Shown here in pieces: positions 3,312 to 62,699 of a DNA stretch of 64,000 nucleotides. The stretch covers positions 62,001-126,000 of the forward strand of contig JALMLS010000478.1 in NCBI GenBank assembly GCA_038496445.1, written 5' to 3'. Numbering within the stretch: position 1 is the first letter of the stretch; each line of letters begins with the position of its first letter. Under the pieces are notes generated by a model. That model was not told the DNA's origin. It worked only from the letters and a program-made list of their open reading frames with translations, and searched no databases. The position numbers and the translations under genes were made by a program. The stretch is from Trichosphaerium sp. ATCC 40318. Lineage: Eukaryota > Protista > Tubulinea.

Positions 3312-3357
3312 TGAAGAGCCAAATGAATGTCGTTATTGTAACCATTTGCTTTAGAAA

Positions 3358-5674
3358 ATGAATTCGCTCTACTTCTGCGCTATATTGTTGATTTTCGCAT
3401 TTGTCGCTATGGATCATGGTAAAACAGGTACGAAGAGTAGTACAAGCGCTTTATGATTAACAGTAGTCTTGTTTTAGTCATAACTTCAAGTGAACACGTT
3501 TGTGGCAATAATATTAGTTGTTATCTGCTAGAAGAACCTACAGAGCTTATTCTCAATTCAACAAACTTGATTTTGGGTAACTTTAGTGGCTTTGAAGTTA
3601 CAAAAAGTGTTGACATTTATGGTAAGTTGGTAGTTCTCAGTCAGTTGTAACTAAGTGCGTTTAGGATTGTATAATGTAAATGTCTCTTGCAATGGAACAC
3701 AGCGAGTGTACTCAGTATTCAATAATGTGAGTATCTCGATGTCTGGATTTACAATTCGAGATTGTAATGTCAGAGTCAAAGTTTATTCGAATGTTACCAT
3801 TACGTACTTGGAGCAAGGCAACCCTAAAATCAATGTTAATATTCACTTTAGAAACATGACGTTTACTGGACATAATGCGGGCTTATTTGTTAGCTGCAGG
3901 TACAATATTATTTAAGTGATTCCTTACAACTGTACAGTGCTGTGGCGACTCTAAAACAAGTGATATTTAGAGATATTATTGTTCGGGCCTCATTTTCGGA
4001 TGTGCTGGTTATTGCTGAAACAGAAACAGCTTATTTGCAAGATTGTATTTTTTCACATATCACCCACACCTACAGTGCACAAGGTACCAAAGAATAATCG
4101 TATTTTAACTTTTTTTCATAATATCACAAAGCTTTGATTGGGATTGTAAGAGTGACAACTGTACGCGAGTTTTTTTATTTTTAGTCTCATTTTTATGAGT
4201 AGGCTGTAATCAAGTATTGTTTGGTTGAGGACAATAATTTGATCAATGCTCCTATCGTATACTTATTACATACAAATGAAACAGAAATATCAAACTCTTA
4301 TTTTGTGAGAAACAGGAACACAGTGCTATTTGACGACAGATGCAGTGGTACTATTTATACTTTCCGTTCAATTATGAGTAATAACACTCTTTGGAATAGA
4401 GTCTGTGGATGTGAACCACAATAGTAGGTTGCTTGTAGATTCTTGTGTGTTTGAGGATAATACTTGCACATACCCTCACTCGTCAGTTCTTTGTAAAAGT
4501 ATCTTGCCACTTACAATACTTGTTTAGAAAAACAAATACTTCAGCAACTCTAAGCTCTCCTTCATTTGTTGGGTTTAAAAGCAACATTACAATAAGGTGA
4601 AGAATATTCTATTAACTAGTGAAGTGCTTATCTTTGTGTAGAAATACAAGATTTACTGATGCCAATAACGGTAATCATAAGTACCAAATAGTTTTAATCC
4701 CAAGTAGAACCAAATACAATATTACTATTTTCCTGTACCTCAATATTGTCCTCTGACGCGATACCAAATAACTTCACTTGCAAATGTTACAGTACTACAT
4801 TCTTTGAAGAGTGCAACACAACCGGTAACAGTATTCATACTCAACTCCATTTTCTGACAATATTTAATAGTCACATGCAACAACGAACAGTACTGTGGTA
4901 AGACGTTTACAAAGAGCAACTAAAGGATCATTTATTCTCTTACATTTTAATTTCTAGTAATTCCAACAGTTGAGCCAACGGTGCCACCAACAATCGCACC
5001 TACAGCTGGAACTCTACCAAATGAAATTGTGTTATCTGGTCCTTTGATAATAGGTGGTGATTTGGTCCTCTCAGGGACAGCTACAATTACTCCAGGAGGC
5101 TTTCTTGAAGTTCAAGGTAACACGTGATTTAGTTTTGATATTTTATCTCATTGAGTCATCCTTGATCTCATCAAGTGTAGGATCTATTGTGATACCACCA
5201 AACACAACATTCATCATTGATTTCACTGGGTATAATGATACAATAATTGATGACACAAGAATAGAAGTGATGAGAAGTAACAATGGCACAATAACCGGTA
5301 ATGTTACACTTGCTCCGCCCCCACAAAAGACGTGTTTAAGTGCATCACTTGATAGAACTCTCTCATCGTATGTCTATGTCTACTTTTGAGTCATCTAAAT
5401 GACCCTGATTTTGATTTTAGGATATTTGTAATTGCATCAAGACCTGACAGGTGTGACATAACAGAAACAGTGAACGTTGGCATGGTGCTTGGTATAACTT
5501 TTGGTGTTCTTGTATTGGTATGTTGTATTTGGGTCCAGCGTGTTAGCAACTCTGACTTGGTAGTAGGTAATTGTTGGCCTTGTTGTCATCTTCTTTGTTC
5601 CAGAGTTGAGACGTGCGATTGTACCACACCCATTACGTAAAAACACACTAAAAGTTACTTCTGTCAAAGAATAA
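3358..5674 (+). CDS. Variable beta-helix type-I membrane protein, copy 1
   Basis: Signal peptide MNSLYFCAILLIFAFVA; repeated coils ISMSGFTIRDC / VTITNMTFTG / AYLQDCIFS / EISNSYFVRN / LVDSCVFEDN; Cys-rich exons; PTVEPTVPPT stalk; TM VGMVLGITFGVLVL..; short basic tail; many short introns. Confidence 0.8.
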
Positions 5675-6051
5675 TTGTACTTTTTCAATAAACAGCTACT
5701 TCATTTGTTGTCAAAAAAACCCAAAGATATTTCTCCAGGAAAGTCGTCTTGTCACATATCACGTATAATTAGTCTTCAAAAAATTATTAAAAGTATGAAA
5801 TTTCGTTTAGTGTTTGAGCAAATTTCCCTGTTTTTAGCTAGTCTATCAGCCAGTATGTTCGGTCAAAAACAGAGTCATCAAATGGGTTCGGAAGCCTTAA
5901 GGAATCGCCGTACTCTAAGATTTTACAATATGATATTGACACGTTGTAGTTCAACAAACTGCCACGCAACAAGTTGTGTTGTTCAATGAATAAGACATTG
6001 TTCTCTCACTTGTGACGCATCATACTATTTTCAGAAACAACTACATACGCA

Positions 6052-7014
6052 ATGGCTCTAATATTACAAGACGATATAGTATTTGAGGTATCTCAGTATC
6101 TCCCACTACCCTCAATTGTAGCTTTGCGTTCTGTGACGAAGAATACAAGAAGCCTCCCATACATGGTAAAAGACATGTCAGGACAAGTAAAATACGAAAG
6201 TAAAGTGTATAGCAAGCCAACAGATGTACTACAAATTCTAAAAAAAGCTCCATTAAGAGACTTAATTATAAACTGGACAGTAGATGCTGAAACTCTTATT
6301 GATGCTATAAAAAGTTGCTCCAAGACACTAAGAAATGTTGTTATCGATGCTAGTATTGGTAAAGCAAACACTATAAATGACATTGTTGACGTTCTTTCTT
6401 GTTGTACTCAACTACAATCTGTGACTTTGTGTACTATCCCAGAAGATTGCTCATCACTTAAGAATATCAAAACAGAAAGTTTGACATTATATACAGATCC
6501 AAGTGTTGAAGAACTCATCGATATCTCTCCTCATTTTGGAGAGTTACGTTTAAAAGATTGCTCTCAAAATTATACAGATGGATCAATATATTGTGTGGGA
6601 GTTGATGAAGAAGAAGGTGTCGATGCATATTGCGTTATAACACAATCAACATGTGGTGACTTAACATGTCATTGTGGTGGTTTTTATGCAAGGAAAATGT
6701 TCCCAAATGGTCGCACAGACTGGGAACCAGAACATGGACAAAGATGGTCACTTAACTCTCGTGTTGTTGAACTATATGATCAACTATCTACAACTCAATA
6801 TGTTGGCTTAGACATCAAAGGAGAAGAACATGATGTTCAAATTGTTCAATTAGATGCTGTTTTTGATACTGACGATGACATACAACAAACCATTGCTGAT
6901 AAATTTGATAAAGGCGAAATTGTTCATGTGGTCGTTTGGGAGTTTGTTATGGATTCTGGTTCATCGTTTAAAAATGTAATTAAAATGATCTGTGAGCCAT
7001 CATATTGGCAATAA
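6052..7014 (+). CDS. Intronless F-box-like protein with LRR-like middle region
   Basis: 320-aa ORF; N-terminus LQDDIVFEVSQYLPLPSIVALRSVTK fits F-box consensus; CSKTLRNVVI and CTQLQSVTL resemble LRR-like units. Confidence 0.65.
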   Translation: MALILQDDIVFEVSQYLPLPSIVALRSVTKNTRSLPYMVKDMSGQVKYESKVYSKPTDVLQILKKAPLRDLIINWTVDAETLIDAIKSCSKTLRNVVIDASIGKANTINDIVDVLSCCTQLQSVTLCTIPEDCSSLKNIKTESLTLYTDPSVEELIDISPHFGELRLKDCSQNYTDGSIYCVGVDEEEGVDAYCVITQSTCGDLTCHCGGFYARKMFPNGRTDWEPEHGQRWSLNSRVVELYDQLSTTQYVGLDIKGEEHDVQIVQLDAVFDTDDDIQQTIADKFDKGEIVHVVVWEFVMDSGSSFKNVIKMICEPSYWQ

Positions 7015-11060: not shown

Positions 11061-11094
11061 TATACATGGGTTACGGGTCTCTAAAGGACTCGCT

Positions 11095-18193: not shown

Positions 18194-18240
18194 ACACTTG
18201 GAAGAGGAGGTATGGACTTAGGTTTTATTTATTAAACTTG

Positions 18241-33403: not shown

Positions 33404-35397
33404 ATGGATTTGGTCTATTTCTGCGCTGTATTCTTAATTGTCACGTTTGTCGCTATGAATAATGGTAATACAGGTACGAGTAGTACAAGCCTTTAAGAAT
33501 AACAATAATTTTGTTTTAGTCATAACTTCAAGTGAACACGTTTGTGGCAATAATCTTAGTTGTTATCTGCGAGAAGAACCTACAGAGCTTATTCTCAATT
33601 CAACAAACTTGTTTTTTGATAACTCTACAATACCTTACGTTAGACAAAGCGTTGACATTTATGGTAAGTTGGTGGTTCTCAGTCAGTTGTAACTAAGTGC
33701 GCTTAGGATTGTATAATGTAAATGTCTCTTGCTACGAAATAGAGCAGTTACGCTCACTTTCTGTAATCAGTATCTCGATGTCGGGATTTACAATTCGAGA
33801 CTGCTTTTTCTCACTAAGCGATTATGCGAATGTTACCATGACGTACTTGGAGCAAGGCAACCCTAAAAGCAATGTTAATACTCACTTTAGAAACATGACA
33901 TTTACTGGGCATCAAGCAGGCTTATATGTTGTTCCTAGTGTGCTCAATACGGCTGTGACTCTAAAAAATGTGGCATTTAGAGATATTTTTTTCGAATCAT
34001 TCCCTGTTCCGGTATTTACTGTTGCTCACATAGAAAGAGCTTATTTGCAAGATTGTGTTTTTTCACAGATATCTCACGCCAACAACGAAACACTCACACA
34101 GGGTACCAAAGACCAATCATGTTTGTCCATAACGCCACATAGGTGCTATTGTTTTTCAGAGCATTACAAGCGTACACAAGCAATTTATTTTGAATCTCAT
34201 TTAACTGATTTAATTAGGTTGTAATCAATTCTTGTTTCTTTGAGGACAATAATATTATTGATGCTCCACTTTTAAACATATTTTCAGATGAAGCAGAAAT
34301 ATCAAACTCTAGTTTTGTGAGAAATAAAGCGAGCACATCACCTGACGGCACATGTAGGGGTAATGTTACATGTAGTTATGAGTATTAACCACAATTTGGA
34401 ATAGAGTATGTGGATGTACAGTATACTAGGTTGCTTGTAGATTCTTGTGTGTTTGAGAATAATACTTGCATGTACGTTCTCTTGTTTGTTCTATTGTGAA
34501 GTATCTTGCCATTTACAATACTCGTTTAGAAGAACAAATTCTTCAGCAATTCTAACTTCTCCTTCTTTTGATGGGTTTGAAAGCAACATTACAATAAGGT
34601 CAAGAATATTCTATTTACTGGTGTGGTGAAGTGCTTATCTTTGTGTAGAAATACAATCTTTGTTAATGCAACTGTGCCACCAATAATCACACCTACAGTT
34701 GAGCCAACTGCGCCACCGGCAACCACAACTACACTACCAAATGAAATTGTGTTATCTAGTACTTTGATAATAGATGGAGACTTGATCCACTCAGGAACAG
34801 CTACAATTACTCCAGGAGGCTTTCTTGAAGTTGAAGGTAACACGTGATTCAGTTTTTGATATTTTATGTTATTGAGTCATCCTTGATCTCATTAAGTGTA
34901 GGATCTATTGTGATACCACCAAACACGATGTTCATCATTGATTTCACTGGTTACAATGATACAATTGTTGATGACACAAGAATAGAAGTAATGAGAAGTA
35001 ACAATGGCACAATAACCGGTAATGTTACGTTTGTTCCACCTCCACAAGAGACGTGTTTAAGTGCATCACTTGATAGAACTCTTTCATCGTATGTCTATGT
35101 CTACTTTTGAGTCATCTAAATGACCCTGATTTTGATTTTAGGATATTTGTAATTGTATCAAGACCTGACACTTGTGGCAACAAACCAGAAACAGTGAACG
35201 TTGGTATGGTGCTTGGTATTACTTTTGGTGTTCTTGCATTGGTATGTTGTTATCTTGATTTTAGCATGTTCCTTTTGACTTGGTGATAGGTGGTCATTGG
35301 TCTTATTGCCATCTTCTTTATTACAAAGTTGAGACATGCAATTGTACCATACTCATTACGTAAAATCTCACTAAAAGTTACTTCTACTGAAAGTTAA
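33404..35397 (+). CDS. Variable beta-helix type-I membrane protein, copy 3 (lacks Cys-rich module)
   Basis: Last coil RNTIFVNA runs straight into the Pro/Thr stalk at about 34670. Confidence 0.8.
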
Positions 35398-36063: not shown

Positions 36064-37093
36064 CGAAGCTGGAAGTACAATGTAAGTACCTAACCAAGGA
36101 GACCTAACATCTCTCAAGGTATTGGAAGTCCTTGGCAACACTCAAATTATAATAGAAGCTTACCATAGAACTTTGTATCGCGTTTATCTACAATGTTGTC
36201 GACAAAAGAAGTAAATTATAGTATTTATACCGGTGAGTCCATTGTTCAGTCGTGTTACAATTATTGGAAATATAAATGGTACTCATTGTTGTCATTCAGC
36301 TGAAAATTCCAATGACGTCACATGGAAAAATGTTGGGTTTTTTTGACATCCAACGAAATAAAAATCAACACGATTGTCCCTTTTATTTTGCACAGTATCT
36401 AAAGAATTTTATTGGAGTTTTATCAACACTGATATTTGATAATAAAACGTGAACTCTTATTTTTCTCCACAAATTTTGTGGAGATATACTTGTGCTACTG
36501 CTCAATTAGATAGTTTTTAGAAGAATACATAGCACACAAGTACTGCAAAACTTCACTTCGCTTTTTAAAGGATTTACGAGGACCGTTGGATCTAATGTTT
36601 ATATATTATGCACCACGCCATTGTGCTTGTATACCCTGTTTTAACTTTGTTTGCTTTTGACAATATCGAGAACAAACAAAACGCTCAAAGTTACAATCAT
36701 GCCCCCCATCAGTGGTGTTGTCGTCATTGTTGAAACAAACAATGAGAACAGATCACACTTGATTATTTTTTAGAAACTGTTTTCCTCAAACCATCACGTG
36801 CGTTGATTTCAAAAACTATGAATATCTTATCGTTCTAGTTACGAGGAGTAGCTATTTACTTTAGAAAATGGATTTGGTCTATTTCTGCGCTGTATTCGTA
36901 ATTGTCACGTTTGTCGCTATGGATCATGGTAAAACAGGTACGAGTAGTACAAGCCCTTTATGATTAACAATAATTTTTGTTTTAGTGATAACTTCAAGTG
37001 AACATGTTTGTGGCAATGATCTTAGTTGTTATCTGCGAGAAGAACCTACAGAGCTTATTCTCAATTCAACAAACTTGGTTTTGTTGAGTAACT

Positions 37094-37340
37094 AGAGATG
37101 GTATGGGAAACTGAAACAGTGAAAATTACGAAATTTTATAACTTCTATGTTTCAAACACAACTTACATAATATCAGGTATTTGAATTTTTTATGTTGCTC
37201 TACAAGGAGCGTAGAGTACGAAAATTGGCTTAGAATTTTGCTAAAAACTGTTGTAAATTGGAAATGTAAATTCTGAAATATTTCACTTTTGGCTCTTTTT
37301 TCAAAAAGTGTTAACAATTTCAGTTTTCCATACCATCTCT
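37094..37340. mobile_element. MITE-like non-autonomous DNA transposon (about 247 bp)
   Basis: TIRs AGAGATGGTATGGGAAACTGAAA / TTTCAGTTTTCCATACCATCTCT (1 mismatch); TSD readable as ACT or TA; absent from the five paralogues. Confidence 0.85.
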
Positions 37341-37786
37341 ACTATACTGGGCTTGGAGTTACAAAAAGCGTTGACATTTATGGTAAGTTGGTTCTCAGTC
37401 AGTTGTAACTAAGTGCGTTTAGGATTGTATAATGTGAATGTCTCTTGCTACGAAGTCCAGTGGTTAATCTCATCTTTGTATGATAAAATCAGTATTTCGA
37501 TGTCGGGATTTACAATTCGAGATTGCTCTATCGCACTACGCGAATATGAGAATGTTACCATTACGTACTTGGAGCAAGGCAACCCTAAAATCAATGGTAA
37601 TACTCACTTTAGAAACATGACATTTACTGGACGTGATACGGGCTTATATGTTATTAATAATGCGATCAATACTGCTGTGACTCTAAAAAATGTGGCATTT
37701 AGAGATATTTTTCTCGAATCATTTCTTGATGCGGTATTTTTTGTTTCTTCTGCAAAAACAGCTTTTTTGCAAGATTGTGTTTTGTC

Positions 37787-37879
37787 TGTAACAGGTAAAG
37801 ATGTCACTCCGAACACAATATTTATTATCTAGGCCTTTTACATAGGTTGACTTTTACGTGGAGTAATTTCCCTCTTACA
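37787..37879 (-). repeat. 3' LTR (93 bp)
   Basis: TGTAACAGG...CTCTTACA on + strand, identical to 43803-43895. Confidence 0.95.
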
Positions 37880-37977
37880 TAGCTCCCCTATATCTGAAGT
37901 GTGCGTCCTCGTACACGCGACTGGAGCATAGGAAACCTTTGAAACCTGGTAACCGTAAAACGGAGGATGATTCATGC

Positions 37978-40900
37978 TCAGTCCTTCAGCTGCCTTTCTC
38001 TTTCAAACACTTCTTCTTCATTCTCTATTATCGCCTCTATCCAGGCTTTTAACTCTCTTACATCTTTACATCTCTTCACTTGAGCGACCAACCTGGATTG
38101 TGTGCTATTACTGCGCATATATGGACTACCCTTTCCCACTATGCTCAATAATGCTTTCACGCTATCTTTCATTGGTATAATCAGAATTTTATCTTTGATC
38201 GTTCCCAAGACTTTTAATAAAATTTCTATTCTGTGCTCATACCCCTTCGTTGTTTTATCTTTAACCATATCAGCCTTTTTAGTATTCTCTCTTATCTCTC
38301 TAATTCTTTTCGCTATTACTTTGGTTGTCGTCATCGCATCACCAGCTGTGGTTAACTCAGCCTCTGCTTTGATGTTAGGCAGGTATGTTTTACTTCTGTC
38401 TGGGTCATGGAACTCTTCTTCACGCCCTTCGAACTTCCTCATCTGTTCATCTTGCGTCAGTGCCCCTTCCGGCCGCAAGAACGAATCAATAAAAGGTTTC
38501 AATCGGCGGAAGTTAATTACTCTACTCATTCGGCTTTGAGGAGGTAAGTTGATAAGTGCTGTATTTGGAGACATCAGCTCTAATATCTCATACGGTCCCC
38601 TCCATCTCTTAGCCAACTTTTTCTTTTCACCCGTCTTCACTTGAGGTACGAAGATGTACACTAGCTGACCTGCTTGAAAGTTCACAAATCTTGTTCTTTC
38701 ATTGTAGTACTTCGCTTGCGTCTTCTTGGCCTTTAGTATATTTTCTCTCGCTATCTGGTATGCGAACCGTATTCTATGAGCAAGGGAATCCACCCAATTA
38801 CCCATATTGTACGTGTCTGGTACTTCAACCGTCTCTTCTTTAGTGAGGTCAATTGGTAGTCTTGGTTCTCTACCAAACATCAACGCGTAGGGAGCGTATC
38901 CTGTGACATGATGTACTGCTGTTCTGTAAGCATACAATGCGTAAGGTATCCAATAATCCCAGTTGTTCTGATCTTCGTTCACGAATGCTCTGATAATTTC
39001 TATCAACGTGTGATTAAATCTCTCCACTTGACCATCTGTCTGTGGGTGAAATGCCGCTGTTCTGCTACCTTCAATGCGTAATATTTTGTACACTTCTTTC
39101 ATCAACGCGCCTGTGAAGTCACCACCTTGATCTGTTAAGACACGGTTGGGTATACCGTATCTAAAACAAAACTCTTTAACAAAAACAGGAGCTATATCAA
39201 CCGCCTTATGCCGTGGCAGAGCATACGCATCAACCCATTTAGTAAAGTGGTCAGTGATCACTAGAAGGTACTTATTACCATTTCTCGTATCTGGCAGCGG
39301 TCCTACAATATCCATTGCCACCAGTTGCATCGGTTGTAATACTGGGAATTCAACCATGAATCCTGGTTTTGGTAACCTCGGTGACTTAGCTCTTTGACAC
39401 ATCCTACACGATTTGCACCATTCTCTAGTATCTGAGTACATGCCAGCCCAATAGAAGCGTTCACTGACCTTACCATAGGTCTTAATAAACCCTAGATGTC
39501 CTGCAAAAGGCAGGTCGTGGCATTGGCGAAGCACAAATGGTTGTAACGTTTTTGGTACTACAATCTGCATCTTGTTGCTCTCTCCAAATGAACGATTGGT
39601 ACGATTCACGTGATATAAGATACCTGACGTCTCATCGTACTTCAACCGTCTTGCAAATGTTATAAACACGCTTCTTCTAAAGCCTCTTTGCCTCGTCACA
39701 TATGACGGAACTTTTCCTTGTGTCAAAAACTGTATATAGGCCTTAAGTTCAGGGTCTTTCTCCTGACACTCTGCCCAGTTAATGGCTCCGTATTCTGGTG
39801 TGTTTTCTAAGACATTCACTTCCTCACGTCTCTCGGTGTTACCAAATTTTGTAAACGTATCATCACCTGTCCATAAAGACGTTTCAACTGCGTTAATATT
39901 GCATAATGCCTCATTATTATAAGTATCATTTGCTAACGCATTGAGTTTATCTGACGCCCATGGTGGTCTTGTCAATGCATCAGCATCCGTATGTGTTGCT
40001 CCTTTCTTATACACTAACACAAAGTCCATTTGTTGAACCTCCAACAACCATCTAGCTAACATTGGTTTTGGGTCTGCCAGATTCTGTAAATATTGTAATG
40101 GCTTATGATCCGTATATACAACCAATTTGAACTTTGCAAATGAGAGATATCCTTTAAACTCTCGTAACGCGAGCACGATTCCTAGCATCTCTCGTTCTAT
40201 TGTTGAATATTTTCGTTGGGGAGCTGTGAACGTCTTACTGAAGTATGCTACCACGTGTTGTTTCTTCTTGTGTCTCTGCACTAACGTTCCTCCTGCAGCC
40301 ACTTGGGATGCATCTACGTGTATTTCGAAAGGTTTGGTAAAGTCGGGATGCCTGAGAATAGGAGGTGAAGACAGCATGTCCTTTATCTTTTCAAACGCCA
40401 GCTGTTGTTCTTTACCCCATCTCCATCTAACACCCGTTCGCCTCAAACTGTTGAGCGGTTCTACTACGTGAGCATATTTGGGCACAAACTTTCTATAGTA
40501 ACCTGTTAATCCTAAACATCGTTCTATCTCTTCGACCGTCCTCGGTGGATCAGCTTTCTGAATAGCATCTGTGATACGTGGATTTGTTGCAACTCCTTCT
40601 GCACTCACAACATGACCCAAAAACTCAACCTTATCTTTAAATAGAACTGATTTCTTCGCTTTCAGTTTCATGTTATGCTCTCGTAGCCTCTCAAACAATA
40701 ACTTTAGGTGCACCAGATGATCTTCAAAGGTACTGCTAAACACTATTATGTCATCGACATAACACAAGCACGTCTGCCATAGCAAGCCGGATAACATTAG
40801 GTTCATGTGCCTTTGGAATGTAGCTTGCGCGTTCTTCAAACCAAAGGGCATACCAACACATTCGAAGAGACCCCATTCAGTCGCAAAGGCTGTCTTTTCG

Positions 40901-42690
40901 GCGTCATCTTCGTGCATTCTAATTTGCCAGTACCCGGAGATAGCATCAAATGTACTGAAGTATTTTGCTTTTGCTAACGCTTGCATCATGTCATTGACAC
41001 GCGGCAATGGGTGTACGTCTTTCTTGGTCACCTTATTTAGGCGCCTGAAATCAATACAAAACCTCCACTCCCCACTGCGTTTCTTTACCAGTACCACTGG
41101 TGATGACCATTCTGACTTTGAGTATTTAATCATGTTATTCTTTAACATTTTCTCGATTTCAGCCTTCGCAATTTCTCTCTGTTTTGGTCTCATTGGTCTG
41201 TAAGGAGTACTAATCGGTCTCGTACCCTGAGGTACAGGTATACGGTGTTTAATGCCTTTCACAGCACCTGGCTCTCGCAATGAATCTACAAAGATATCAT
41301 CGTTCTGAGCCATGAACTTATACGCTTTCAACTTCTGTTCTTCTGTGAGGCGACATCCATTAAGTTTAAATCTCTTTTGTGCAGCGTATACATCCTCCAT
41401 GGTTACCTTCGCGCACAAGTCTACTATATCTTGTTTATGCTTTCGGTAATCAAAGTTAAGAGAACACACTTCGTCTCCTTCTTCAAGTGCTCGGAAGCTA
41501 GCTATGTTATAGTTCGCTGGTATCCTTCTCATCACATTGTGAGGGTTCATGACTCGTACTCTTACTAAAGACCTACGTGCCTTACACACCGATCTACTCA
41601 ATTGTATACCCACGTCGTTCAACAGGTTAGCATGACCGCCCTGGTTCTCCAACTGCAGAGGTTCTATCAACCCTTCTTTGTTGTTCACCGGTGTTGACAG
41701 TTTTGCTAGGAACGAACATTCTGTGTATGGCGGTAATTTGATTGCGTTCGTAGTAATCACATTTGCGTACTGCGTCTTTCTATCATTTTCTTGGGTACAT
41801 GTAATGGGTACTTCTTCTCCTTTATGGTTTATCATCATCAACCTTCCGTAATCAATACACATGTTCCACTTTTTCAACATTGTAGTTCCAAGTAATAACT
41901 TATATTTGAACTCTTTAATCACGTGACACCACACCGGTATCTGCGTCTTACCGATTGTGATTTGCATTTTAATCAAACCCAAAGCTTTAATTTGCTTGTT
42001 ATCCGCTGTGTATATTGGCCTTGTAGCATCAGGTATGATATTCTTTTGCAACTTCAACCGTTCTACCAGACGCGAATCAACAATGCACATTGAAGCTCCA
42101 GAATCTAACAACGCATTGACTTTTAGGTCGTTAACACGCACGCGCGCCTTGGTGACAGTATAATGGAACGCCTCACTTTTCTCACCCTCATTATCACACA
42201 CATTCAACAATCTTGCCGTAGCAGACAAATGACACGAGTTATCAAACAACACATTGTAACTCCAAAAACTTTTATTGTCACGATCTCTACGGTACGAATC
42301 TTCATCGCGATCTCTTCTTCGCAGCTCTCTCTCTCTTCTGTAACCGTCTCTGTCACGGTCGTCTTCACGTTCACGTCGGTATCGATCTTCGCTTGGGTAA
42401 TCGTCATCCATCGCGTTAACTCTTCTTGCTGAGGGACAATCATAACTCATATGGCCATACCCATTGCAGTTAAAGCACTTCGGTCCATCATCCAAGCGTT
42501 TCCTTGGTGGCGAAGAGCGTCTCTGAGCGGTGATGGTCATATATCTGTTGCCTTCCAGAGTATCCTTGACGTTGTCCATATCCACTGGATCCATAATTGC
42601 GGCGGTTGTTCGTCGATCTGTATCTCTGCTGTTGACGTCCTTGATACCCTCGTTGCGATCTCCACTTAGCTTGGCGTACTCCTCTGTCAT
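37978..42690 (-). CDS. pol: Gypsy polyprotein: CCHC knuckle, aspartic protease, RT, RNase H, integrase
   Basis: CFNCNGYGHMSYDC; LLDSGAS; YVDD; HVDAS..EREMLG..TDHKPL; HHCC finger; D-D-E core; WRGPY. Confidence 0.95.
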   Translation of the reverse strand: MTEEYAKLSGDRNEGIKDVNSRDTDRRTTAAIMDPVDMDNVKDTLEGNRYMTITAQRRSSPPRKRLDDGPKCFNCNGYGHMSYDCPSARRVNAMDDDYPSEDRYRREREDDRDRDGYRRERELRRRDRDEDSYRRDRDNKSFWSYNVLFDNSCHLSATARLLNVCDNEGEKSEAFHYTVTKARVRVNDLKVNALLDSGASMCIVDSRLVERLKLQKNIIPDATRPIYTADNKQIKALGLIKMQITIGKTQIPVWCHVIKEFKYKLLLGTTMLKKWNMCIDYGRLMMINHKGEEVPITCTQENDRKTQYANVITTNAIKLPPYTECSFLAKLSTPVNNKEGLIEPLQLENQGGHANLLNDVGIQLSRSVCKARRSLVRVRVMNPHNVMRRIPANYNIASFRALEEGDEVCSLNFDYRKHKQDIVDLCAKVTMEDVYAAQKRFKLNGCRLTEEQKLKAYKFMAQNDDIFVDSLREPGAVKGIKHRIPVPQGTRPISTPYRPMRPKQREIAKAEIEKMLKNNMIKYSKSEWSSPVVLVKKRSGEWRFCIDFRRLNKVTKKDVHPLPRVNDMMQALAKAKYFSTFDAISGYWQIRMHEDDAEKTAFATEWGLFECVGMPFGLKNAQATFQRHMNLMLSGLLWQTCLCYVDDIIVFSSTFEDHLVHLKLLFERLREHNMKLKAKKSVLFKDKVEFLGHVVSAEGVATNPRITDAIQKADPPRTVEEIERCLGLTGYYRKFVPKYAHVVEPLNSLRRTGVRWRWGKEQQLAFEKIKDMLSSPPILRHPDFTKPFEIHVDASQVAAGGTLVQRHKKKQHVVAYFSKTFTAPQRKYSTIEREMLGIVLALREFKGYLSFAKFKLVVYTDHKPLQYLQNLADPKPMLARWLLEVQQMDFVLVYKKGATHTDADALTRPPWASDKLNALANDTYNNEALCNINAVETSLWTGDDTFTKFGNTERREEVNVLENTPEYGAINWAECQEKDPELKAYIQFLTQGKVPSYVTRQRGFRRSVFITFARRLKYDETSGILYHVNRTNRSFGESNKMQIVVPKTLQPFVLRQCHDLPFAGHLGFIKTYGKVSERFYWAGMYSDTREWCKSCRMCQRAKSPRLPKPGFMVEFPVLQPMQLVAMDIVGPLPDTRNGNKYLLVITDHFTKWVDAYALPRHKAVDIAPVFVKEFCFRYGIPNRVLTDQGGDFTGALMKEVYKILRIEGSRTAAFHPQTDGQVERFNHTLIEIIRAFVNEDQNNWDYWIPYALYAYRTAVHHVTGYAPYALMFGREPRLPIDLTKEETVEVPDTYNMGNWVDSLAHRIRFAYQIARENILKAKKTQAKYYNERTRFVNFQAGQLVYIFVPQVKTGEKKKLAKRWRGPYEILELMSPNTALINLPPQSRMSRVINFRRLKPFIDSFLRPEGALTQDEQMRKFEGREEEFHDPDRSKTYLPNIKAEAELTTAGDAMTTTKVIAKRIREIRENTKKADMVKDKTTKGYEHRIEILLKVLGTIKDKILIIPMKDSVKALLSIVGKGSPYMRSNSTQSRLVAQVKRCKDVRELKAWIEAIIENEEEVFERERQLKD

Positions 42691-43783
42691 ACTCGTCTAC
42701 ACATTGTCGCTTAGAGTCGTCATCTCTTCGCGAATCTGCTTTTCTTTTCGTCGCCAACGAATTTAGCGCATCTTTGCGTCTAGCTGCCTCTACCGCTTCC
42801 TGTACACGTCTGTCTTCCTCTTTTTGCTTCTTAGCGTCCTTATCTGCGACCTCTTGACTAAGCTCCTGCCACGACGCCGTTTTGTAGATCGTTTGTGCTC
42901 CTGACGTGTTGATCTCTCCTTTTAACGTCTTCATCACAAATTGGCGCGTCTCTGCCTTTAAACCTTTCAAAAACGCTGCCGCACGCGTACGTTCGTCGAC
43001 CAGAGCTGTATCCGCCAATCGCATGCAGTATTCATAATATGCCGTCAAACTTTGCGTCTTTTTCTGTTGTACCGACTGTAACAACTCCAACGCTCGTACG
43101 GACTGTACAGCCATCTGAAATCCCTGGATTAACGCTCTAATAGCTTTTGCGTAATCTCTGTTGAACTTTCTCGCCTTCAACAATCTCGCTGCACGTCCTT
43201 CACACCTTTGTCGTAACACATATACACATGCTTCTTCATTGCACTTGAACACCGAGCAATATTCTTGGATCTTTGACAAGAACACTTCTAACTCTACGGC
43301 TTTGCTTGAAAACATCGGTATGTGGTTGAAACGCTTGCACTCCGTTTGTTTACGCTTGTTACCGCGCCATTTAACCCTCTTCGGTTTGTCCTCATCATCG
43401 TACACAAGATGTGGCATAAAGGCTAATACCGTCGCTCTCTCTGCTTCTGTGATCTCCGTAAGATGTTCCAAAACGCTTCGACTCCTGACCATTGCTTTTG
43501 TGCGTTCCTTTGATTTATCTTCCGACTCTGAACTTGAACTTGAAGAACTAGCTGTACTTGTGGAACTATCACTGCTAGAACTGACTTCCTTCGAATCACC
43601 TTTCGATCTCCCTTTTCTTTTTGGCTTTGTGTCTTTTTCTTCCTCATCAGCCTTCTCCTCCTTTCTTTTTCCTCTCGGTATACTCTCCTCCTCCTCTTCT
43701 TCAACACTTTCGACGTACTCTTTATCCAAAGTCTTCTTTGGCTTCCGTCTCTTAGTAGTAAGCTTCGTTTGTGTTTTAGACAT
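42488..43783 (-). CDS. gag: Gypsy Gag (capsid-like)
   Basis: 431-aa ORF starting right after the PBS; capsid-like QQKKTQSLTAYYEYCMRLA..AFLKGL. Confidence 0.85.
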   Translation of the reverse strand: MSKTQTKLTTKRRKPKKTLDKEYVESVEEEEEESIPRGKRKEEKADEEEKDTKPKRKGRSKGDSKEVSSSSDSSTSTASSSSSSSESEDKSKERTKAMVRSRSVLEHLTEITEAERATVLAFMPHLVYDDEDKPKRVKWRGNKRKQTECKRFNHIPMFSSKAVELEVFLSKIQEYCSVFKCNEEACVYVLRQRCEGRAARLLKARKFNRDYAKAIRALIQGFQMAVQSVRALELLQSVQQKKTQSLTAYYEYCMRLADTALVDERTRAAAFLKGLKAETRQFVMKTLKGEINTSGAQTIYKTASWQELSQEVADKDAKKQKEEDRRVQEAVEAARRKDALNSLATKRKADSRRDDDSKRQCVDEYDRGVRQAKWRSQRGYQGRQQQRYRSTNNRRNYGSSGYGQRQGYSGRQQIYDHHRSETLFATKETLG

Positions 43784-43802
43784 CTCTGCTCGAGTCGCCA
43801 GA

Positions 43803-43895
43803 TGTAACAGGTAAAGATGTCACTCCGAACACAATATTTATTATCTAGGCCTTTTACATAGGTTGACTTTTACGTGGAGTAATTTCCCTCTTACA
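43803..43895 (-). repeat. 5' LTR (93 bp)
   Basis: Identical to 37787-37879; followed on the minus strand by TC-TGGCGAC PBS. Confidence 0.95.
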
Positions 43896-46407
43896 TGTCA
43901 CAAATCACCATTGCTCACACCAACAAAACATCGCTGGGTACACCTAACGACCAAATATGTTTGTCCATAACGTCATATAGCTGTTATTGTTTTTAATGGT
44001 GTGGAAACAGTACGCAACCAATTTATTTTGAATCTCATTTAACTGCTTTAATTAGGTTGTAATCAATTCTTGTTTGATTGAGGACAATAATATTATTGAT
44101 GCTCCACTTTTATTCATATTTTCAGGTGAAGCAGAAATATCAAACTCTAGTTTTGTGAGAAACCAAGTGAGCATACCATCTATTGGCAGATGCACGGGTA
44201 CTATCTTACTTTCAATTATGAGTACTAATCCTCTTGGAATAGAGTCTGTGGATTTACTGAGTGTTAGTAGGTTGCTTGTAGATTCTTGTGTGTTTGAGAA
44301 TAATACTTGCATGTACGTTATCTTGTTCTGTTGTATCGTGAAGTATCTTGCCATTTACAATACTCGTTTAGAAGAACAAATTCTTCAGCAATTCTAACTT
44401 CTCCTTCATTTGATGGGTTGGAAAGCAACATTACAATAAGGTCAAGAATATTCTATTTACTGGTGAAGTGCTTACTTTGCGTAGAAATACAATATTTGCT
44501 AGTGATGGTAATTGTGAAACAAATGTATTAGTTACTTGTTTTAATAATCAGAGATAGTAAACACAAATCCAGTATTTTCTTGTCGCTCGATAACAAATAA
44601 TTTCACTTGCAAATGTTACAGTACTACATTCTTTGGAGAGTGTAACACAACTGGTACCAATATTCATACTCAATTTAACACTAACTGATAGTATTTAATA
44701 GTTACATGCAACAACGAGCAGTACTGTGGTAAGACTTTTACAAAGAACAATGGAAAAAAAGACGTAACCTCTTTTAATCTTACATTTTAATTGCTTATAT
44801 TCTAGTAATCCCAACAGTTGAGCCACCAATTGCACCTACAGCTGTAACTCTACCAAATAAAATTGTGTTATCTGGTCCTTTGATAATAGATGGAGATTTG
44901 ATCCACTCAGGAACAGCTACAATTACTCCAGGAGGCTTTCTTGAAGTTGAAGGTAACACGTGATTCAATTTTTGATATTTTATGTTATTGAGTCATCCTT
45001 GATCTCATCAAGTGTAGGATCTATTGTGATACCACCAAACACGATGTTCATCATTGATTTCACTGGTTACAATGATACACTTGTTGATGACACAAGAATA
45101 GAAGTAATGAGAAGTAACAATGGCACAATAACCGGTAATGTTACGTTTGTTCCACCTTCAGAAAAAACGTGTTTAAGTGCATCACTTGATAGGACTCTTT
45201 CATCGTATGTCTATGTCTACTTTTGAGTCATCTAAATGACCCTGATTTTGATTTTAGGATATTTGTAATTGTATCAAGACCTGACACTTGTAGAACAGAA
45301 ACAGTGAACGTTGGTATGGTGTTTGGTATTACTTTCGGTGTTATTGTATTGTTGGTATGTTGTTATCTTGTTTTAACGTCTTCGTAACTTTTGACTTGGT
45401 GATAGGTGGTTATTGGTCTTATTGTCATCTTCTTTGTTACAAAGTTGAGACATGCAATTGTACCATACTCATTACGTAAAATCTCACTAAAAGTTACTTC
45501 TACTGAAAGTTAATTGTAATAAACAATCGATTTAAGGCTCTTTGTTCAATTTAAAGTTCCATTTTATAGTTCAGTTGTAAAGAGCATTTACCTGCACCTA
45601 TGTTCACAAACCATGTCGAAAATCAGGCTTAGTATTAACAAACTAGCGTTATTTGAACGAGAACAAGATTACTTTTTTTCTAATGTTATCTTGCAACAAA
45701 ATTACTAACCGTTTCACCGAGTACTATCTAGCATACCAAATATTAACTGTTTGCCATTGCAAAGTTTTTGTGGTTTGTCTACAAGCCAAAAAAATTCGGT
45801 GTTTGATAAGCTGCAAGCATAATCGTTTTAATAATAACGGAGTTACTCCAATAAGCCTGTTATATGCGGCTTTGAGTTTGAAATCATGTGCTAGTTTTGT
45901 AGTATTCTACTGGCTATTGGTCATGATAAGGGTAATCATTGTGCTCATTATCAGAGTTAGATTAAGAGTGACACTTCAAGTAAGGACATTCACAGGATTT
46001 TATCCAAAACACAAAAGCCGTTTATCCAAAACAGACTCAAATCAAAGGAATTTACGACTGTTACTATTATACACGTTATATCTTGAGTTATATTGACCCA
46101 TAATACCTTAAAATGGCTTTGATTGAACTATTTAGATCATGCGTTCTTGTTGATCTACAATACCAGATTGGAGGAGAATACGTCTCACCTAGCTTCGATC
46201 CCCTGGATCACTTAGCCAGAGACCCTTCCATTTATTTTAAATCTTAATCTTCCCTGGTACTGCTGATGTTGTTTTTGACGATGCTACCGTACTTAAACAA
46301 CTACCTCTCACTTATCAAACAGCAGTAAAATACTTATTTTTCTCTTATAGTTATGGTAGTCTTGCTCAGAAGTGATAGTTTATTAAACTCATAGTAGTAC
46401 AAAATGT

Positions 46408-50450: not shown

Positions 50451-52763
50451 ATGGATTTGGTCTATTTCTGCGTTGCGTTGTTCGTATTAGTCGCTATGAC
50501 TCATGGTAGAACAGGTACGAGTAGTATTAAAACAAGCCTTTAGTAAAGGCCGTTCAAATAACAGAAATTGTGTTTTAGTCATAACTTCAAGTGAACATGT
50601 TTGTGGCAATGATATTGGTTGTTATCTGCGAGAAGAACCTACAGAGCTTATTCTCAATTCAACAAACTTGACTTTGGGTAACTTTAGTGGCGAAACCGAA
50701 GTTTCAAAAAGCGTTGACATTTATGGTAAGTTGGTGGTTCTCAGTAAAGTTGTAACTAAGCGCGTTTAGGATTGTATAATGTAAATGTCTCTTGCGAAGG
50801 AGAGCGGCTATCCCCACTTTACAACAATATCAGTATCTCGCTGTCAGGATTTACAATTCGAGATTGCCTAGTCAGACTTTACGATTATGCGAATGTTACC
50901 ATGACGTACTTGGAGCAAGGCAACCCTAAAAGCAATGTTAATATTCACTTTAGAAATATGACGTTTACTGGACATGATACAGGCTTAAGGGTTATAGACA
51001 GGTACAACGCTATTGCTATAGATACAGTTGCTTACAACTGAACTATAGTGACGTGTCGCTTAAAAAAGTGACATTTAGAGATGTTTTTATATCATCATTT
51101 GCTGCTTGGAATGTTCTGAGCATTGATTTCACAGAGAGGGCTTATTTACAAGATTGTGTTTTTTCGCATATTGCTTACAATGAACCATATAGAGCAGGTA
51201 CCACAGAAAAATTATATTAACTTTTTAGATAACACCACATAGCACTGATTCGTATTAAAACAGTGACAAGAGTACACAAGCAATTTATTTTGAATCTCAT
51301 AACGTATAATTAGGTTGTAATCAATTCTTGTTTCGTTGAGGACAATACTATTTTTGAGACTACATTTTTAAACATAGTACAAACAGATGAAGCAGAAATA
51401 TCAAACTCTAGTTTTGTGAGAAACAAAGCGAGCATACCATCTGACGGCACATGTAGGGGTACTATCTTACATGTAGTTATGAGTACTAACCATAATTTGG
51501 AATAGAGTATGTGGGTGTACACTCTAGTAGGTTGCTTATAGACTCTTGTGTGTTTGAGAATAATACTTGCATGTACGTTCTCTTGTTTGTTCTATTGTGA
51601 AGTATCTTGCCATTTACAATACTCGTTTAGAAGAACAAATTCTTCAGCAATTCTAACTTCTCCTTCATTTCTCGGGTTGGAAAGCAATATTACAATAAGG
51701 TCAAGAATATTCTATTTACCGGTGAAGTGCTTATCTTTGTGTAGAAATACGAGATTTACTAATGACAGTGGTAATTATAAAGACAACTAAATAGTTTTAA
51801 TCCAAGGTAGAACCAAACATAGTATTTTCCTGTGACTCAAATAATCTCAATTTCACGTGTGAAAAAAACAAATGCTACAGTACTACATTCTTTGGAGAGT
51901 GCAATACAACTGGTAACTATACCAATATTATATTCACACTCAACTTAACAGTATCTGACAATATTTAATAGTTACATGCAACAACGAACATTATTGTGGT
52001 AATACCTTTTACGGTTCAAAAAAGCGTACTATCTAACATAGCAATCTAGTAACTCCCACAGTTGAGCCAACTGTGCCACCGACAACCACACCTACAACTG
52101 CAACCCTACCAAATGGAATCGTGTTATCTGGTCCTTTGATAATAGATGGAGATTTGATCCACTCAGGAACAGCTACAATTACCCCAGGAGGCTTTCTTGA
52201 AGTTGAAGGTAACACGTGATTCAGTTTTTGATATTTATGTTATTGAATCCTTGATCTCATCAAGTGTAGGATCTATTGTGATACCACCAAACGCGACATT
52301 CATCATTGATTTCAGTGGTTACACTGTTGCAATAATTGATGACACGAGAATTGAAGTAATGAGAAGTAATCACGGTTCAATAAGCGGTAGTGTTGCACTT
52401 GTTCAACCAGAAAAGCCATGTTTAAGTGCAATGCTTGACAGGAGTCTTTCATCGTATGTCTATGTCTACTTTTGAGTCATCTAAATGACCCTGATTTTGA
52501 TTTAAGGATATTTGTAATTGCATCAAGACCTGACACTTGTGGCAACAAAACTGAAACAATGAACCTTACTATGGCGCTAGGTATTACTTTTGGTGTTCTT
52601 GTATTGGTATGTTGCTATCTTATTTTTAGCGTGTTCACAACTTTTGACTTGGTGATAGGTGCTCATTGGTATTATTGTTATTTTCTTTGTTCCAAAGTTG
52701 AGACATGCAATTTTGCCGTTCTCACTACGTAAAGCACATAAAATTTCTTCTACTGCAAGTTAA
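50451..52763 (+). CDS. Variable beta-helix type-I membrane protein, copy 5
   Basis: Full exon set of the family, TM and tail. Confidence 0.8.
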
Positions 52764-55963: not shown

Positions 55964-56059
55964 TTTTAGTAAAACGATTACTTACAATGAGGTGTTGGAG
56001 TTTGAGTGGTGTTGGTATCGCTTAAAGTGAGCGTAAAAGCACTTAACCAATATATGCAA

Positions 56060-60105: not shown

Positions 60106-60480
60106 ACAAACGATTTTGTGGCAGTTAGTTGGTGAGAAGCTAATTTAACTATCATGTGACGAAATAAACTACATGTTTACAAAGAAACGTTTTGTCTTTG
60201 TTTTTTTTTTCTTGGACCTGTAGTCTCGGTACATACAAAGACACCAAGTTTTTGTACCAGCTTCATGGCTTACATGTATGTTGATCTTGAACCGAAAGAT
60301 GCCTTCCGAAAGCAATTCTAAGTAGGGACTGGGAAAGTAGTTGATCTAACCATTTCATCTAATAGCCTAATACGAGCTAAAAATAGCAACCAGAGGTGTA
60401 AAACGCAGTGTTAATAACTACCTCTCTAACAACCTAAGTGAGAATAAAGTAGGGTATCTACTGTTTATTGAAAAGTACAA

Positions 60481-62699
60481 TTAACTTTCAGTAGAAGTGA
60501 CTTTTAGTGTGTTTTTACGTAATGAGTATGGTACAATTGCATGTCTCAACTTTGTAACAAAGAAGATGGCAATAAGACCAATGACCACCTATCACCAAGT
60601 CAAACTTGCTACTGCTAAAAACAAATAACATACCAATAAAAGAACACCAAAGGTAATACCAAGCACCATACCAACGTTCACTGTTTCTGGTCTGTTGCCA
60701 CAAGTGTCAGGTATTGATACAATTACAAATATCCTAAAATCAAAATCAGGGTCATTTAGATGACTCAAAAGTAGACATACGATGAAAAAGTTCTATCAAG
60801 CACTGCATTTAAACACACCTTTTCTGGAGGTGGAACAAGTGTAACATTACCACTTATTGTGCCATTGTTACTTCTCATTACTTCAATTCTTGTGTCATCA
60901 ATTATTGTATCATTAAAACCAGTGAAATCAATGATGAATGTTGTGTTTGGTGGTATCACAATAGATCCTACACTTGATGAGATCAAGGATGACTCAATAA
61001 CATAAAATATCAAAAATTGCGTTACCTTCAACTTCAAGAAAGCCTCCTGGAGTAATTGTAGCTGTTCCTGAGTGGATCAAGTCTCCATCTATTATCAAAG
61101 GATTAGATAGCGTAATTTCATTTGGCAGAGTTCCAGTTGTAGGTGTGGCTGTTGGAGGGACTGTTGGCTCAACTGTTGGAGTTACTAGAAAGTACAATGT
61201 TAGAAAAATAAGCTCCTTGTTCGGTTGCTGCTCTTTGTAAACGTCTTACCACAATACTCCTCGTTGATGCATGTGACTATCAAGTACTGTTAGACAATGC
61301 CTTTGAGTATGAATACTGGTACCAGTTGTATTGCACTCTGCCTTTTCCGCATGCGAAATTTGTTGTAAGCCGGTCACAAGAAAAAGTTGTATTTGGGTCT
61401 AATTGGAGTAAACTATTAGTTGAATTTGTGGTCTCGATTTTACCATTATTATCATTAACAAATCTTGTATTTCTACACAAAGGTAAGCACTTCACAGTTA
61501 ATAGAATATTCTTGACCTTATTGTAATGTTACTTTCAAACCCATCAAAAGAAGGAGAAGTTAGAATTGCTGAAGAATTTGTTCTTCTAAACGAGTATTGT
61601 AAATGGCAAGATACTTCACAATAGAACAAACAAGAGAACGTACATGCAAGTATTATTCTCAAACACACAAGAATCTATGAGCAACCTAGTAGAGTATACA
61701 CCCACATACTCTATTCCAAATTGTGGTTAGTACTCATAACTACATGTAACATAGTACCCCTACATGTGCCGTCAGATGGTATGCTCACTTTATTTCTCAC
61801 AAAACTAGAGTTTGATATTTCTGCTTCATCTGACTGTACTATGTCTAAAAATGGAGTCTCAAAAATAGTATTGTCCTCAACCAAACAAGAATCAATTACA
61901 ACCTAAGCAGAAATGAGATCGTAAAAATAACATGGTCGTGTACTCTTGTGCTAGCAATTAAGTAAATCAAAGAGCTAGAGGTAGCTGAGGGGATTGTTCC
62001 GTTATAAGAATTCTGTGAAAAAACGCAATCTTGCAAATAAACTGTTTCTGCATTTCGAATATCCAGTACATCAAAAAAAGAAACAAAAACAATATCTGTA
62101 AATGTCACATTTTTAAGAGTCACCACACTACTATACAGTTGTAAGCGACCATATCATATAATAGTGTACCTGTCTATAACCTCTAGGCCCGCATTATATC
62201 CAGTAACTGTGATATTTCTGAGTTAGATTAGCATTGCTTTTAGGTTTGCTTAAACTCAAGTACGTAATGGTAAAATTTGCAAAATCGTAAAGTATGACTT
62301 GACAATCTCGAATTGTAAATCCCGACATCGAGATACTGATATTATTGTAATGTGAGAGTAACCACTCCGTTTTGTTGCAAGAGACATTCACATTAAACAA
62401 TCCTAAACGCACTTAGTTACAACTGACTGAAAACCAACTTACCATAAATGTCAACGCTTTTTCTAAGTGTCACAAAGTTACCAAAAACCAAGTTTGTTGA
62501 ATTGAGAATAAGCTCTGTAGGTTCTTCTCGCAGATAACAATTAATATCATTGCCACAAATGTGTTCACTTGAAGTTATCACTAAATTGTAAAATTATGTA
62601 ATTAAATTATAAAGCGCTTGCACTATTCTTACGTGTGTTACCATGACTCACAGCGAAAAACGTGATAACTAATACAGCGTAGAAACAAAGCGAATCCAT
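60481..62699 (-). CDS. Variable beta-helix type-I membrane protein, copy 6
   Basis: Full exon set of the family on the minus strand. Confidence 0.8.

Follow-up and report, generated by a model that had tools for sequence, protein, structure and literature searches.

Six gene copies in one window

The window that we analyzed, a 64-kb stretch of DNA from the amoeba Trichosphaerium, contains six copies of a gene, with ATG start codons at 3358, 33404, 36868, and 50451 on the forward strand and at 21551 and 62699 on the reverse strand. A preliminary description had claimed six copies and quoted the peptides that follow VNVSC and IRDC in each; the count is right, and 12 of 12 peptides are exact.

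3245..3312, forward: upstream motif pair (a 16-mer and a CACGTG-containing 10-mer), in the coordinates of c1
3358..5674, forward: copy c1, 15 exons, 547 amino acids
19520..21551, reverse: copy c2, lacking about two coils through an internal deletion near 20697
33404..35397, forward: copy c3, intact, 499 amino acids, Cys-rich exons lost in frame, intron 3 absent
36868..45513, forward: copy c4, exons otherwise open (537 amino acids), broken by two transposon insertions
37094..37340, strand not assigned: MITE-like insertion of 247 nt in exon 2 of c4, with 23-nt terminal inverted repeats (96%) and a 3-bp target duplication
37787..43895, reverse: Ty3/gypsy LTR retrotransposon in exon 3 of c4, with identical 93-nt LTRs and a 4-bp target duplication
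50451..52763, forward: copy c5, intact, 15 exons, 534 amino acids
60481..62699, reverse: copy c6, frameshifts near 62220 and 61340, intron 4 absent

Genes are both born and lost at this locus. Copies c3 and c5 are intact and c1 probably is; half of the six are apparently broken. The frame of c1 is open only via a shifted donor for intron 7, at 4482, and the usual GT is gone. The frame of c2 breaks at the canonical splice sites and is restored only by weak donors. The deletion near 20697 is probably frame-breaking, and c2 is probably a pseudogene or a truncated secreted form. Copy c6, which is 2 nt short near 62220 and has lost 17 nt near 61340, is also a probable pseudogene. (The shortfall is possibly an assembly error.) Together with the two transposons in c4 and the lost donor in c1, these lesions contradict the earlier claim that indels in this family are whole codons. 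The Ty3 element in c4 has an open frame of 1570 amino acids (protease-RT-RNaseH-integrase). In our alignments, frameshifts were masked as N or X, and c4 was read through its insertions for alignment only.

Each of the two upstream motifs has exactly one exact occurrence before each of the six genes and occurs nowhere else in the window, so the pair is a candidate for a shared promoter. We rejected the idea that the copies are alleles or assembly duplicates: they have different flanks and neighbors, and protein identity is 55-78% for most pairs. We also rejected a ciliate-type genetic code because the stops fall inside GT-AG introns of 28-77 nt.

Protein architecture, fold, and relatives

Each copy is predicted to encode a type I membrane protein. 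The domain order in the gene models is a signal peptide, a right-handed beta-helix of about nine coils, a Cys-rich and Pro/Thr stalk, a juxtamembrane domain, one membrane helix, and a tail of about 25 residues. The C-terminal features of c5 are:

52050..52453, forward: Pro/Thr stalk together with the conserved juxtamembrane domain (family members 84% identical, omega 0.41)
52507..52763, forward: single transmembrane helix and cytoplasmic tail of about 25 residues

We found no signaling domain in the cytoplasmic tail of c5, and the gene models contain no ATPITK, NPx[YF], or acidic cluster. The exon model is supported by an intron-free MMETSP transcript, which agrees with the spliced models over their full length (41-46% identity).

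The preliminary description proposed a pectin-lyase-like fold, and several lines of evidence point the same way. In the sequence register, the beta-helix repeat pattern spans about nine coils: each has three parallel strands in which inward hydrophobic residues alternate, PB3 ends of the FxxN type occur, and Asn and Cys residues form stacks. A structure model of exon 3 (pLDDT 62) is mostly strand and resembles right-handed beta-helices (VIA Z of 5-7 to NosD, tailspikes, and lyases; TM of about 0.6 in the atlas). A language-model search gave a match of 0.92 to PF13229 clusters. HMM searches gave no above-threshold match, and the MMETSP ectodomain, folded from a single sequence, reached a pLDDT of 32. 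With moderate confidence, we predict a right-handed parallel beta-helix.

For the similarity searches, we used exons, not joined spliced proteins, as queries. Among 1.84 billion representatives, a profile of exon 3 matched the MMETSP protein and, weakly, one beta-helix protein that looks unrelated, and nothing else. Searches of 90% clusters, metagenomes, and viral and bacterial contigs, and of Pfam, NCBIfam, PHROGs, and PDB sequences, found no further relatives among the close or similar-length proteins that these methods can see. Within that reach, the best reading is that the family is lineage-restricted. It matches no characterized enzyme family (in Pfam, NCBIfam, or PDB) and conserves no catalytic residue, and we found no description of it in the literature that we searched.

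Variation on the groove face

Variation is confined to the T3 loop, PB1 strand, and T1 turn of successive coils. It falls in the following windows.

50671..51528, forward: variable windows W0-W7 of c5
50671-50706, forward: W0
50796-50828, forward: W1
50868-50891, forward: W2
50973-51052, forward: W3
51086-51142, forward: W4
51167-51271, forward: W5
51347-51388, forward: W6
51422-51528, forward: W7
33612..34427, forward: c3 counterparts of the eight windows W0-W7

In the first coils, framework (mostly 0-12% nucleotide difference) and windows (15-60%) alternate at a scale of 25-90 nt. The alternation noticed earlier is therefore real, with about eight windows rather than two. Window borders are very sharp, and W1, W2, and W5 have a unique sequence in every copy.

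The variation was also proposed to lie on one face of the solenoid. With faces assigned from the coil register of the sequence and not from 3D coordinates, all 24 fast sites lie in T3-PB1-T1 (24 of 140 sites on this groove face versus 0 of 104 elsewhere, P = 8e-7). Identity between copies is 26% for outward PB1 residues and 86% for outward residues on the other sheets. The number of residue types per column is 3.5 for outward PB1, versus 1.4 for the other sheets (P = 5e-10) and 2.1 for inward PB1 (P = 0.001). Copies c2 and c3 are 4.8% divergent along a 1.7-kb flank; between them, the amino acid is changed at 45 of 81 face codons versus 4 of 74 back codons. The PB1/T3 region is the substrate site of beta-helix lyases (PMC10992409). 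A caveat is that T3 loops are variable in many beta-helix families (PMC11166332), which counts against the binding reading set out below. No position of outward PB1 has an invariant Asp, Glu, Lys, Arg, or His among the copies; the only invariant residue there is a Gly, which is Phe in the MMETSP homolog.

The copies exchange sequence by conversion. We detected recombination (PHI P = 0.001), many identical tracts, and mosaic nearest relatives; conversion is strong. Introns I2, I7, I8, I12, and I13 are near-identical between copies (p of 0.007-0.07), as had been claimed for the introns in general, but the other nine of 14 are not (0.18-0.42). Nor do changes fall mostly at codon positions 1 and 2: at positions 1/2/3, p is 0.40/0.32/0.34 on the variable face and 0.51/0.49/0.39 at outward PB1 sites. 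Second-position differences at outward PB1 sites are 0.33-0.64, versus 0.05-0.25 in flanking DNA.

We then considered selection, using our own implementation of codon models rather than PAML. Omega is 0.94 for the whole variable face, 2.1 for outward PB1 (P = 0.045), and 0.44 for the back face. Divergence at fourfold sites is 0.21 for the face (versus 0.10). Plain M2a gives a statistic of 86 and an omega of 9.4. We read this result with caution, since a model that lets rates vary but keeps omega at or below 1 fits better than M2a by 18.6 log units; the site-model signal mostly reflects rate variation. A class with omega>1, at about 10% of sites, has a likelihood-ratio statistic of 13.2, which was reached in 1 of 24 simulations of conversion; with four copies, this class is not significant. 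Thus, the claim of dN/dS above 1 does not hold for the windows as a whole (about 1); omega exceeds 1 only at outward PB1 or in the 10% class, and the significance of that class becomes borderline when conversion enters the simulations. Where conversion acts, peaks of divergence have been described as a mark of selection (PMC3924837). Overall, positive selection on the groove is only moderately supported.

The preliminary description was accurate about the copies, peptides, and alternation, but not about introns in general, codon positions, or whole-codon indels. Of its interpretation, the fold, the one-face variation, and the absence of an enzyme match stand, and the dN/dS signal is weaker than claimed.

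Candidate functions and known counterparts

We lean toward the view that these are non-catalytic, membrane-anchored, lectin- or adhesin-like beta-helix binding proteins, with a diversifying groove and birth-and-death evolution. The protein would sit atop a glycosylated stalk with its PB1 groove facing outward. Copies would arise by duplication; conversion would homogenize scaffold DNA and exchange groove segments, and selection would favor distinct groove surfaces or shield them from conversion. The copies would differ in ligand, with glycans of the substrate or of bacterial or algal food as the likeliest targets, and copies no longer used would decay. Given the lack of a signaling tail, the output would be attachment or uptake, or a partner protein would be required.

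A more ambitious version, which we find plausible yet doubtful, is a germline recognition repertoire of a free-living amoeba on a pectin-lyase-like beta-helix, in which a groove of the enzyme type has been turned into the variable binding site, short conversion tracts and pseudogene donors supply variation, copies are specific to prey or virus glycans, and possibly one copy is used per cell or nucleus. Such a repertoire would parallel, on a beta-helix, the immune repertoires built from LRR and ankyrin repeats. The evolutionary logic (one-face diversification, conversion, birth and death) is already well known, and the family, to the extent visible here, is small.

It is unlikely that the groove is functionless or tolerant, with old divergence left over in the windows, a scaffold held uniform by conversion and purifying selection, and no adaptive repertoire. 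The near-neutral omega of the face, its synonymous divergence (about 2-4 times higher), the better fit of rate variation than of M2a, and the three broken copies would all be expected. But second-position differences at outward PB1 exceed those of the flanks, C-terminal third positions, and all introns except the most diverged, and, within one strand, outward and inward residues are not equally variable, which tract boundaries alone cannot explain. Alternatively, a virus, parasite, or predator could dock at the groove, and the copies could diverge to escape being bound. This predicts the same sequence signature as the binding reading that we favor, and the short tail, rapid gene loss, and many giant-virus-derived genes of Trichosphaerium (PMC10521059) are consistent with it. 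Yet co-existing divergent copies with one common upstream motif would widen the target, unless expression is exclusive, so we consider escape quite unlikely.

Recognition of kin or self, as by TgrB1/TgrC1 of Dictyostelium, seems to us very unlikely. Like those at the tgr locus (PMC12745789), the genes lie in a cluster, recombine, encode type I membrane proteins, and are partly pseudogenized, and cell contacts are frequent in Trichosphaerium (PMC10521059). On the other hand, these genes lack Ig/TIG domains, a head-to-head receptor-ligand pair, and a signaling tail, and 30 h of video of a Trichosphaerium isolate recorded no cell fusion (PMC10521059). Membrane-bound polysaccharide lyases or hydrolases that diversify in substrate would share the fold of lyases and tailspikes, and digestion of seaweed by Trichosphaerium is reported in papers cited in PMC10521059. 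This is highly improbable given the zero enzyme matches in Pfam, NCBIfam, and PDB and the outward PB1 residues described above. We give scarcely any credence to a dedicated hypermutation or templated-cassette mechanism that rewrites the windows. It would account for the sharp borders and the unique W1, W2, and W5, but there is no base-specific bias (A 0.61, C 0.72, G 0.81, T 0.61), the 64-kb window contains no donor cassettes, and the sole nearby reverse transcriptase is that of an ordinary Ty3 element. The adenine-specific mutagenesis of diversity-generating retroelement targets, which is copied in from a template repeat, is absent from the windows (A 0.61).

Discrimination of prey, pathogens, and kin by free-living amoebae is poorly known, and this family offers specific candidates. 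The two or three intact paralogs, with a common scaffold and differing grooves, are suited to glycan arrays.

Among known systems, trichomonad Pmp-like proteins (PMC6701047) and chlamydial Pmps (PMC11166332) also have a right-handed beta-helix ectodomain with FxxN-type coils and variable T3 loops. The trichomonad proteins, which have been linked to adhesion, likewise belong to an expanded family and carry a single C-terminal membrane helix with a short tail (PMC6701047). However, Pmps alternate GGA[ILV] and FxxN (PF02415), while the amoeba copies hold 0 and 2-5 of these, respectively, and had no PF02415 match in a Pfam search. Also, the amoeba copies have one membrane helix instead of the C-terminal autotransporter barrel of chlamydial Pmps, their models lack the ATPITK and endocytic motifs (NPx[YF], acidic cluster) that go with the membrane helix in trichomonads, the PB1 strand itself is hypervariable, and the host is free-living. 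The Awp1/Awp3 and Hyr1/Iff adhesins of Candida glabrata (PMC8746771) share a non-catalytic beta-helix head, a Ser/Thr-rich stalk, and membership in a paralogous eukaryotic family. But those proteins sit in the wall on a GPI anchor and include an alpha-crystallin domain, PB1 of Awp1 carries regular Ser/Thr ladders, and we detected no sequence similarity to them. The Dictyostelium tgr genes (PMC12745789) likewise encode amoebozoan type I membrane proteins and show duplication, recombination, and pseudogenes, but their products have TIG/IPT domains, tgrB and tgrC genes are paired, and a role in allorecognition has been demonstrated; among the amoeba copies, we found no Ig-like Pfam match and no head-to-head pair with a common promoter. 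Pectate-lyase-fold enzymes and phage tailspikes (PL1, PL6, PL9, GH28) share the fold, and the variable face corresponds to their substrate groove, but it lacks their conserved catalytic or metal-binding residues.

In lamprey VLRs, plant LRR receptors (Cf-4/9, cited in PMC3924837), and natural ankyrin libraries, a solenoid scaffold carries variable outward residues on one sheet, and clustered paralogs of the plant receptors exchange sequence. The amoeba family differs in using a beta-helix, in having no kinase or other signaling domain, and in comprising six known copies and not a large repertoire. The earlier comparison to VLRs holds for the geometry of variation alone and not for somatic cassette assembly: the germline genes are complete, no somatic assembly was seen, and no cassettes of window sequence lie elsewhere in the 64 kb. 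The family suggests that, in eukaryotes, the beta-helix can act as a scaffold for variable binding, much like solenoids of the LRR and ankyrin types. As in the plant LRR receptors, exposed variability is found on one sheet, by coil register (24/140 versus 0/104 fast sites; P = 5e-10 for residue types), along with exchange between clustered paralogs and pseudogene turnover (PHI P = 0.001, identical tracts, and broken copies).

Gene copies, products, and predicted fold

A comparison of the window with itself showed a ~2.3-kb gene that occurs six times, in either orientation (c1-c6, by position). Six is the number given in the preliminary description, and all six of its quoted segments (after VNVSC and IRDC) are present in the sequence. 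We took exon boundaries from a six-way genomic alignment of the copies. The introns are GT-AG and short (28-77 nt), and the window is 37.3% GC; both agree with the published Trichosphaerium draft genome, whose introns are short and whose GC content is 37.69% (PMC10521059). A profile search with exon 3 identified one full-length relative, P0001, which is a MMETSP transcript product without introns. P0001 aligns to each of the six models over the whole length, signal peptide and tail included (41-46% identity). Because this intron-free sequence aligns over its full length, the exon structure is independently supported. MMETSP includes a Trichosphaerium sample, so this relative could be a distantly related paralogue and not an orthologue.

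The gene models for c3 (499 amino acids) and c5 (534 amino acids) are intact. The reading frame of c1 (547 amino acids) is open only with a shifted intron-7 donor; about two coils are missing from c2, which keeps its frame only if weak donors are used; and exons of c4 are interrupted by two elements, a 247-nt MITE and a Ty3/gypsy element of 6.1 kb. Contrary to the claim that indels are whole codons, c6 carries two frameshifts. The claim that introns are near-identical holds only at the low end of their divergence, which spans 0.007-0.42, with high values where introns adjoin variable windows. Introns 3 and 4, whose presence differs between close paralogues, both lie inside variable windows:

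3900-3937 (c1), 51002-51048 (c5), 62131-62169 (c6): intron 3, absent from c2-c4
61990-62000 (c6): site of intron 4, missing from c6

Intron 13 (5368-5420 in c1) is almost invariant in 6/6 copies (divergence p=0.007) and is less diverged than the synonymous sites of its flanking exons. It could be a conversion hot spot or a constrained intron.

The protein comprises a hydrophobic N-terminus, a beta-helix of ~300 residues, a Cys-rich module (lost from c3 by an in-frame deletion), a Pro/Thr stalk, a conserved domain of ~100 residues, a single membrane helix, and a ~25-residue tail. Each copy has 15-19 N-glycosylation sequons. Profile searches gave no matches above threshold. The proposed pectin-lyase-like fold is supported by the repeat pattern, by a single-exon AlphaFold model of moderate confidence (pLDDT 62), by the structural matches of that model, which are right-handed beta-helices (Z 5-7; TM about 0.6), and by the family's language-model neighbours. 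On these grounds, the ~300 residues are predicted to form a right-handed beta-helix.

Variation and probable selection on the groove

Alignment columns were assigned to strands (PB1-PB3) and turns (T1-T3) by coil register, from sequence and without coordinates. As a guide we used the published placement for Pmps (PMC11166332), in which FxxN falls at PB3-T3 and T3-PB1 carries a G-x-hydrophobic motif. The 24 sites whose M2a posterior is >0.8 all lie in T3-PB1-T1, the groove side or face (24/140 vs. 0/104 elsewhere, Fisher P=8e-7), which agrees with the earlier proposal of one-face variation, with some circularity because the register partly relies on conserved motifs. Loop variation is common in many beta-helices, so comparing strand with strand is a more telling control. 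The number of residue types per column is 3.5 at outward PB1 positions; it drops to 1.4 at outward PB2/PB3 (P=5e-10) and to 2.1 where PB1 faces inward (P=0.001). Identity at outward PB1 is 26% within the family and 10% to P0001, versus 86% and 57% at outward PB2/PB3. Of the sequons shared in the beta-helix region, 5/7 are on the back.

There is strong recombination between copies (PHI P=0.001); most pairs share long identical tracts, and the gene halves yield different trees. M2a versus M1a gave a statistic of 86 (omega 9.4 at 12% of sites), but the fit was better than with M2a when a model had one class of sites evolving tenfold faster and allowed no omega>1. Adding omega>1 to that class gained 13.2 (omega 3.7, 10% of sites), which was matched in 1/24 null simulations with conversion; the gain falls to 1.5 when four copies are used. 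By partition, the estimated dN/dS (omega) exceeds the proposed value of 1 at outward PB1 (2.1, P=0.045) and not across the face (0.94); it is 0.44 on the back and 0.41 in the C-terminal domain. Fourfold-site divergence is 0.21 on the face versus 0.10 on the back. In gene families that undergo conversion, peaks of divergence have been described as a sign of selection (PMC3924837), and under conversion such selection-driven peaks would raise synonymous divergence too. Model-free comparisons favour selection: second-position differences per pair are 0.33-0.64 at outward PB1 versus 0.05-0.25 in the flanks, and between c2 and c3, whose long flank is 4.8% apart, 45/81 face codons changed versus 4/74 back codons. 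Positive selection on the groove is therefore likely, not proven. Relaxed constraint with conversion is the next possibility, and an unlikely one.

We lean towards non-catalytic binding proteins at the cell surface, with a constrained scaffold and a groove that has diversified from paralogue to paralogue. Mutation, segment exchange, and selection would change the groove while the scaffold is held, and copies out of use would decay. Given the fold and how the probable host lives, the ligands may be microbial or algal glycans. The mode of working is that of plant LRR clusters and of other solenoid families that vary on one face, and trichomonad Pmp-like proteins (PMC6701047) and Candida Awp adhesins (PMC8746771) have a similar build. 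A changing groove might instead reflect escape from a virus or predator, which we consider rather unlikely, or kin recognition, which is less likely again; the dynamics resemble those of the Dictyostelium tgr locus (PMC12745789). Within this window, c1-c6 lack defining features of Tgr proteins, Pmps, lyases, and VLRs. The substrate site of beta-helix lyases is the PB1/T3 region (PMC10992409), and no charged residue on outward PB1 is invariant among the copies; an enzyme is quite improbable. Programmed hypermutation seems the least plausible, with no adenine bias in the differences between copies and no donor cassettes for variable segments within the 64 kb. In the literature, with thin coverage of subscription journals, we found no description of this family and no report of a protist beta-helix on which selection is restricted to one face.

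The locus

Eukaryotic genes surround the copies (F-box, granulin, M14 peptidase, class C GPCR).

Features around the six copies
3245, 21684(-), 33275, 36743, 50317, 62834(-): exact 16-mer upstream of all six genes, pseudogenes included
3303, 21626(-), 33329, 36794, 50376, 62775(-): CACGTG-containing 10-mer, likewise upstream of all six, pseudogenes included
6052-7014: F-box gene or remnant downstream of c1, a different gene from the c2-c5 family
15091-18193, 22258-23966, 30864-32560: a Cys-rich granulin-domain gene in three related copies, of which the first is broken into scattered pieces
17979-23966 and 30864-36063: arms of a large inverted duplication, 82-92% identical, holding c2/c3, granulin-domain genes, and F-box sequence
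18228-19180 (c2), 35631-36063 (c3), 45653-46096 (c4), 52954-53987 (c5): F-box genes or remnants of one family, directly downstream of the copies
37787-43895: Ty3/gypsy element in c4, with 93-nt LTRs that are identical, a 1570-aa pol ORF, and an upstream ORF of 431 aa
55113-55898 (-): MORN-variant repeat protein whose N-terminus is F-box-like; the gene holds a 72-nt tandem repeat
56000-57055 (+): fragment of the seven-helix region of a class C GPCR (PF00003), lying between c5 and c6

The flanks around the 16-mer and 10-mer differ by 11-25% between copies, and the two motifs are a candidate shared promoter. The Ty3/gypsy element is apparently intact and very recent; its upstream ORF has no Pfam match. 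The arms of the inverted duplication are ~7 kb apart, and the spacer between them contains phosphatase-like and GST-like fragments. The two long F-box genes of the c2-c5 family are 89% identical, and the duplicated unit seems to be a beta-helix gene plus an F-box gene. The MORN-variant protein may be of a type known from giant viruses, and 8935-9615 (-) has an N-terminal stretch similar to it.
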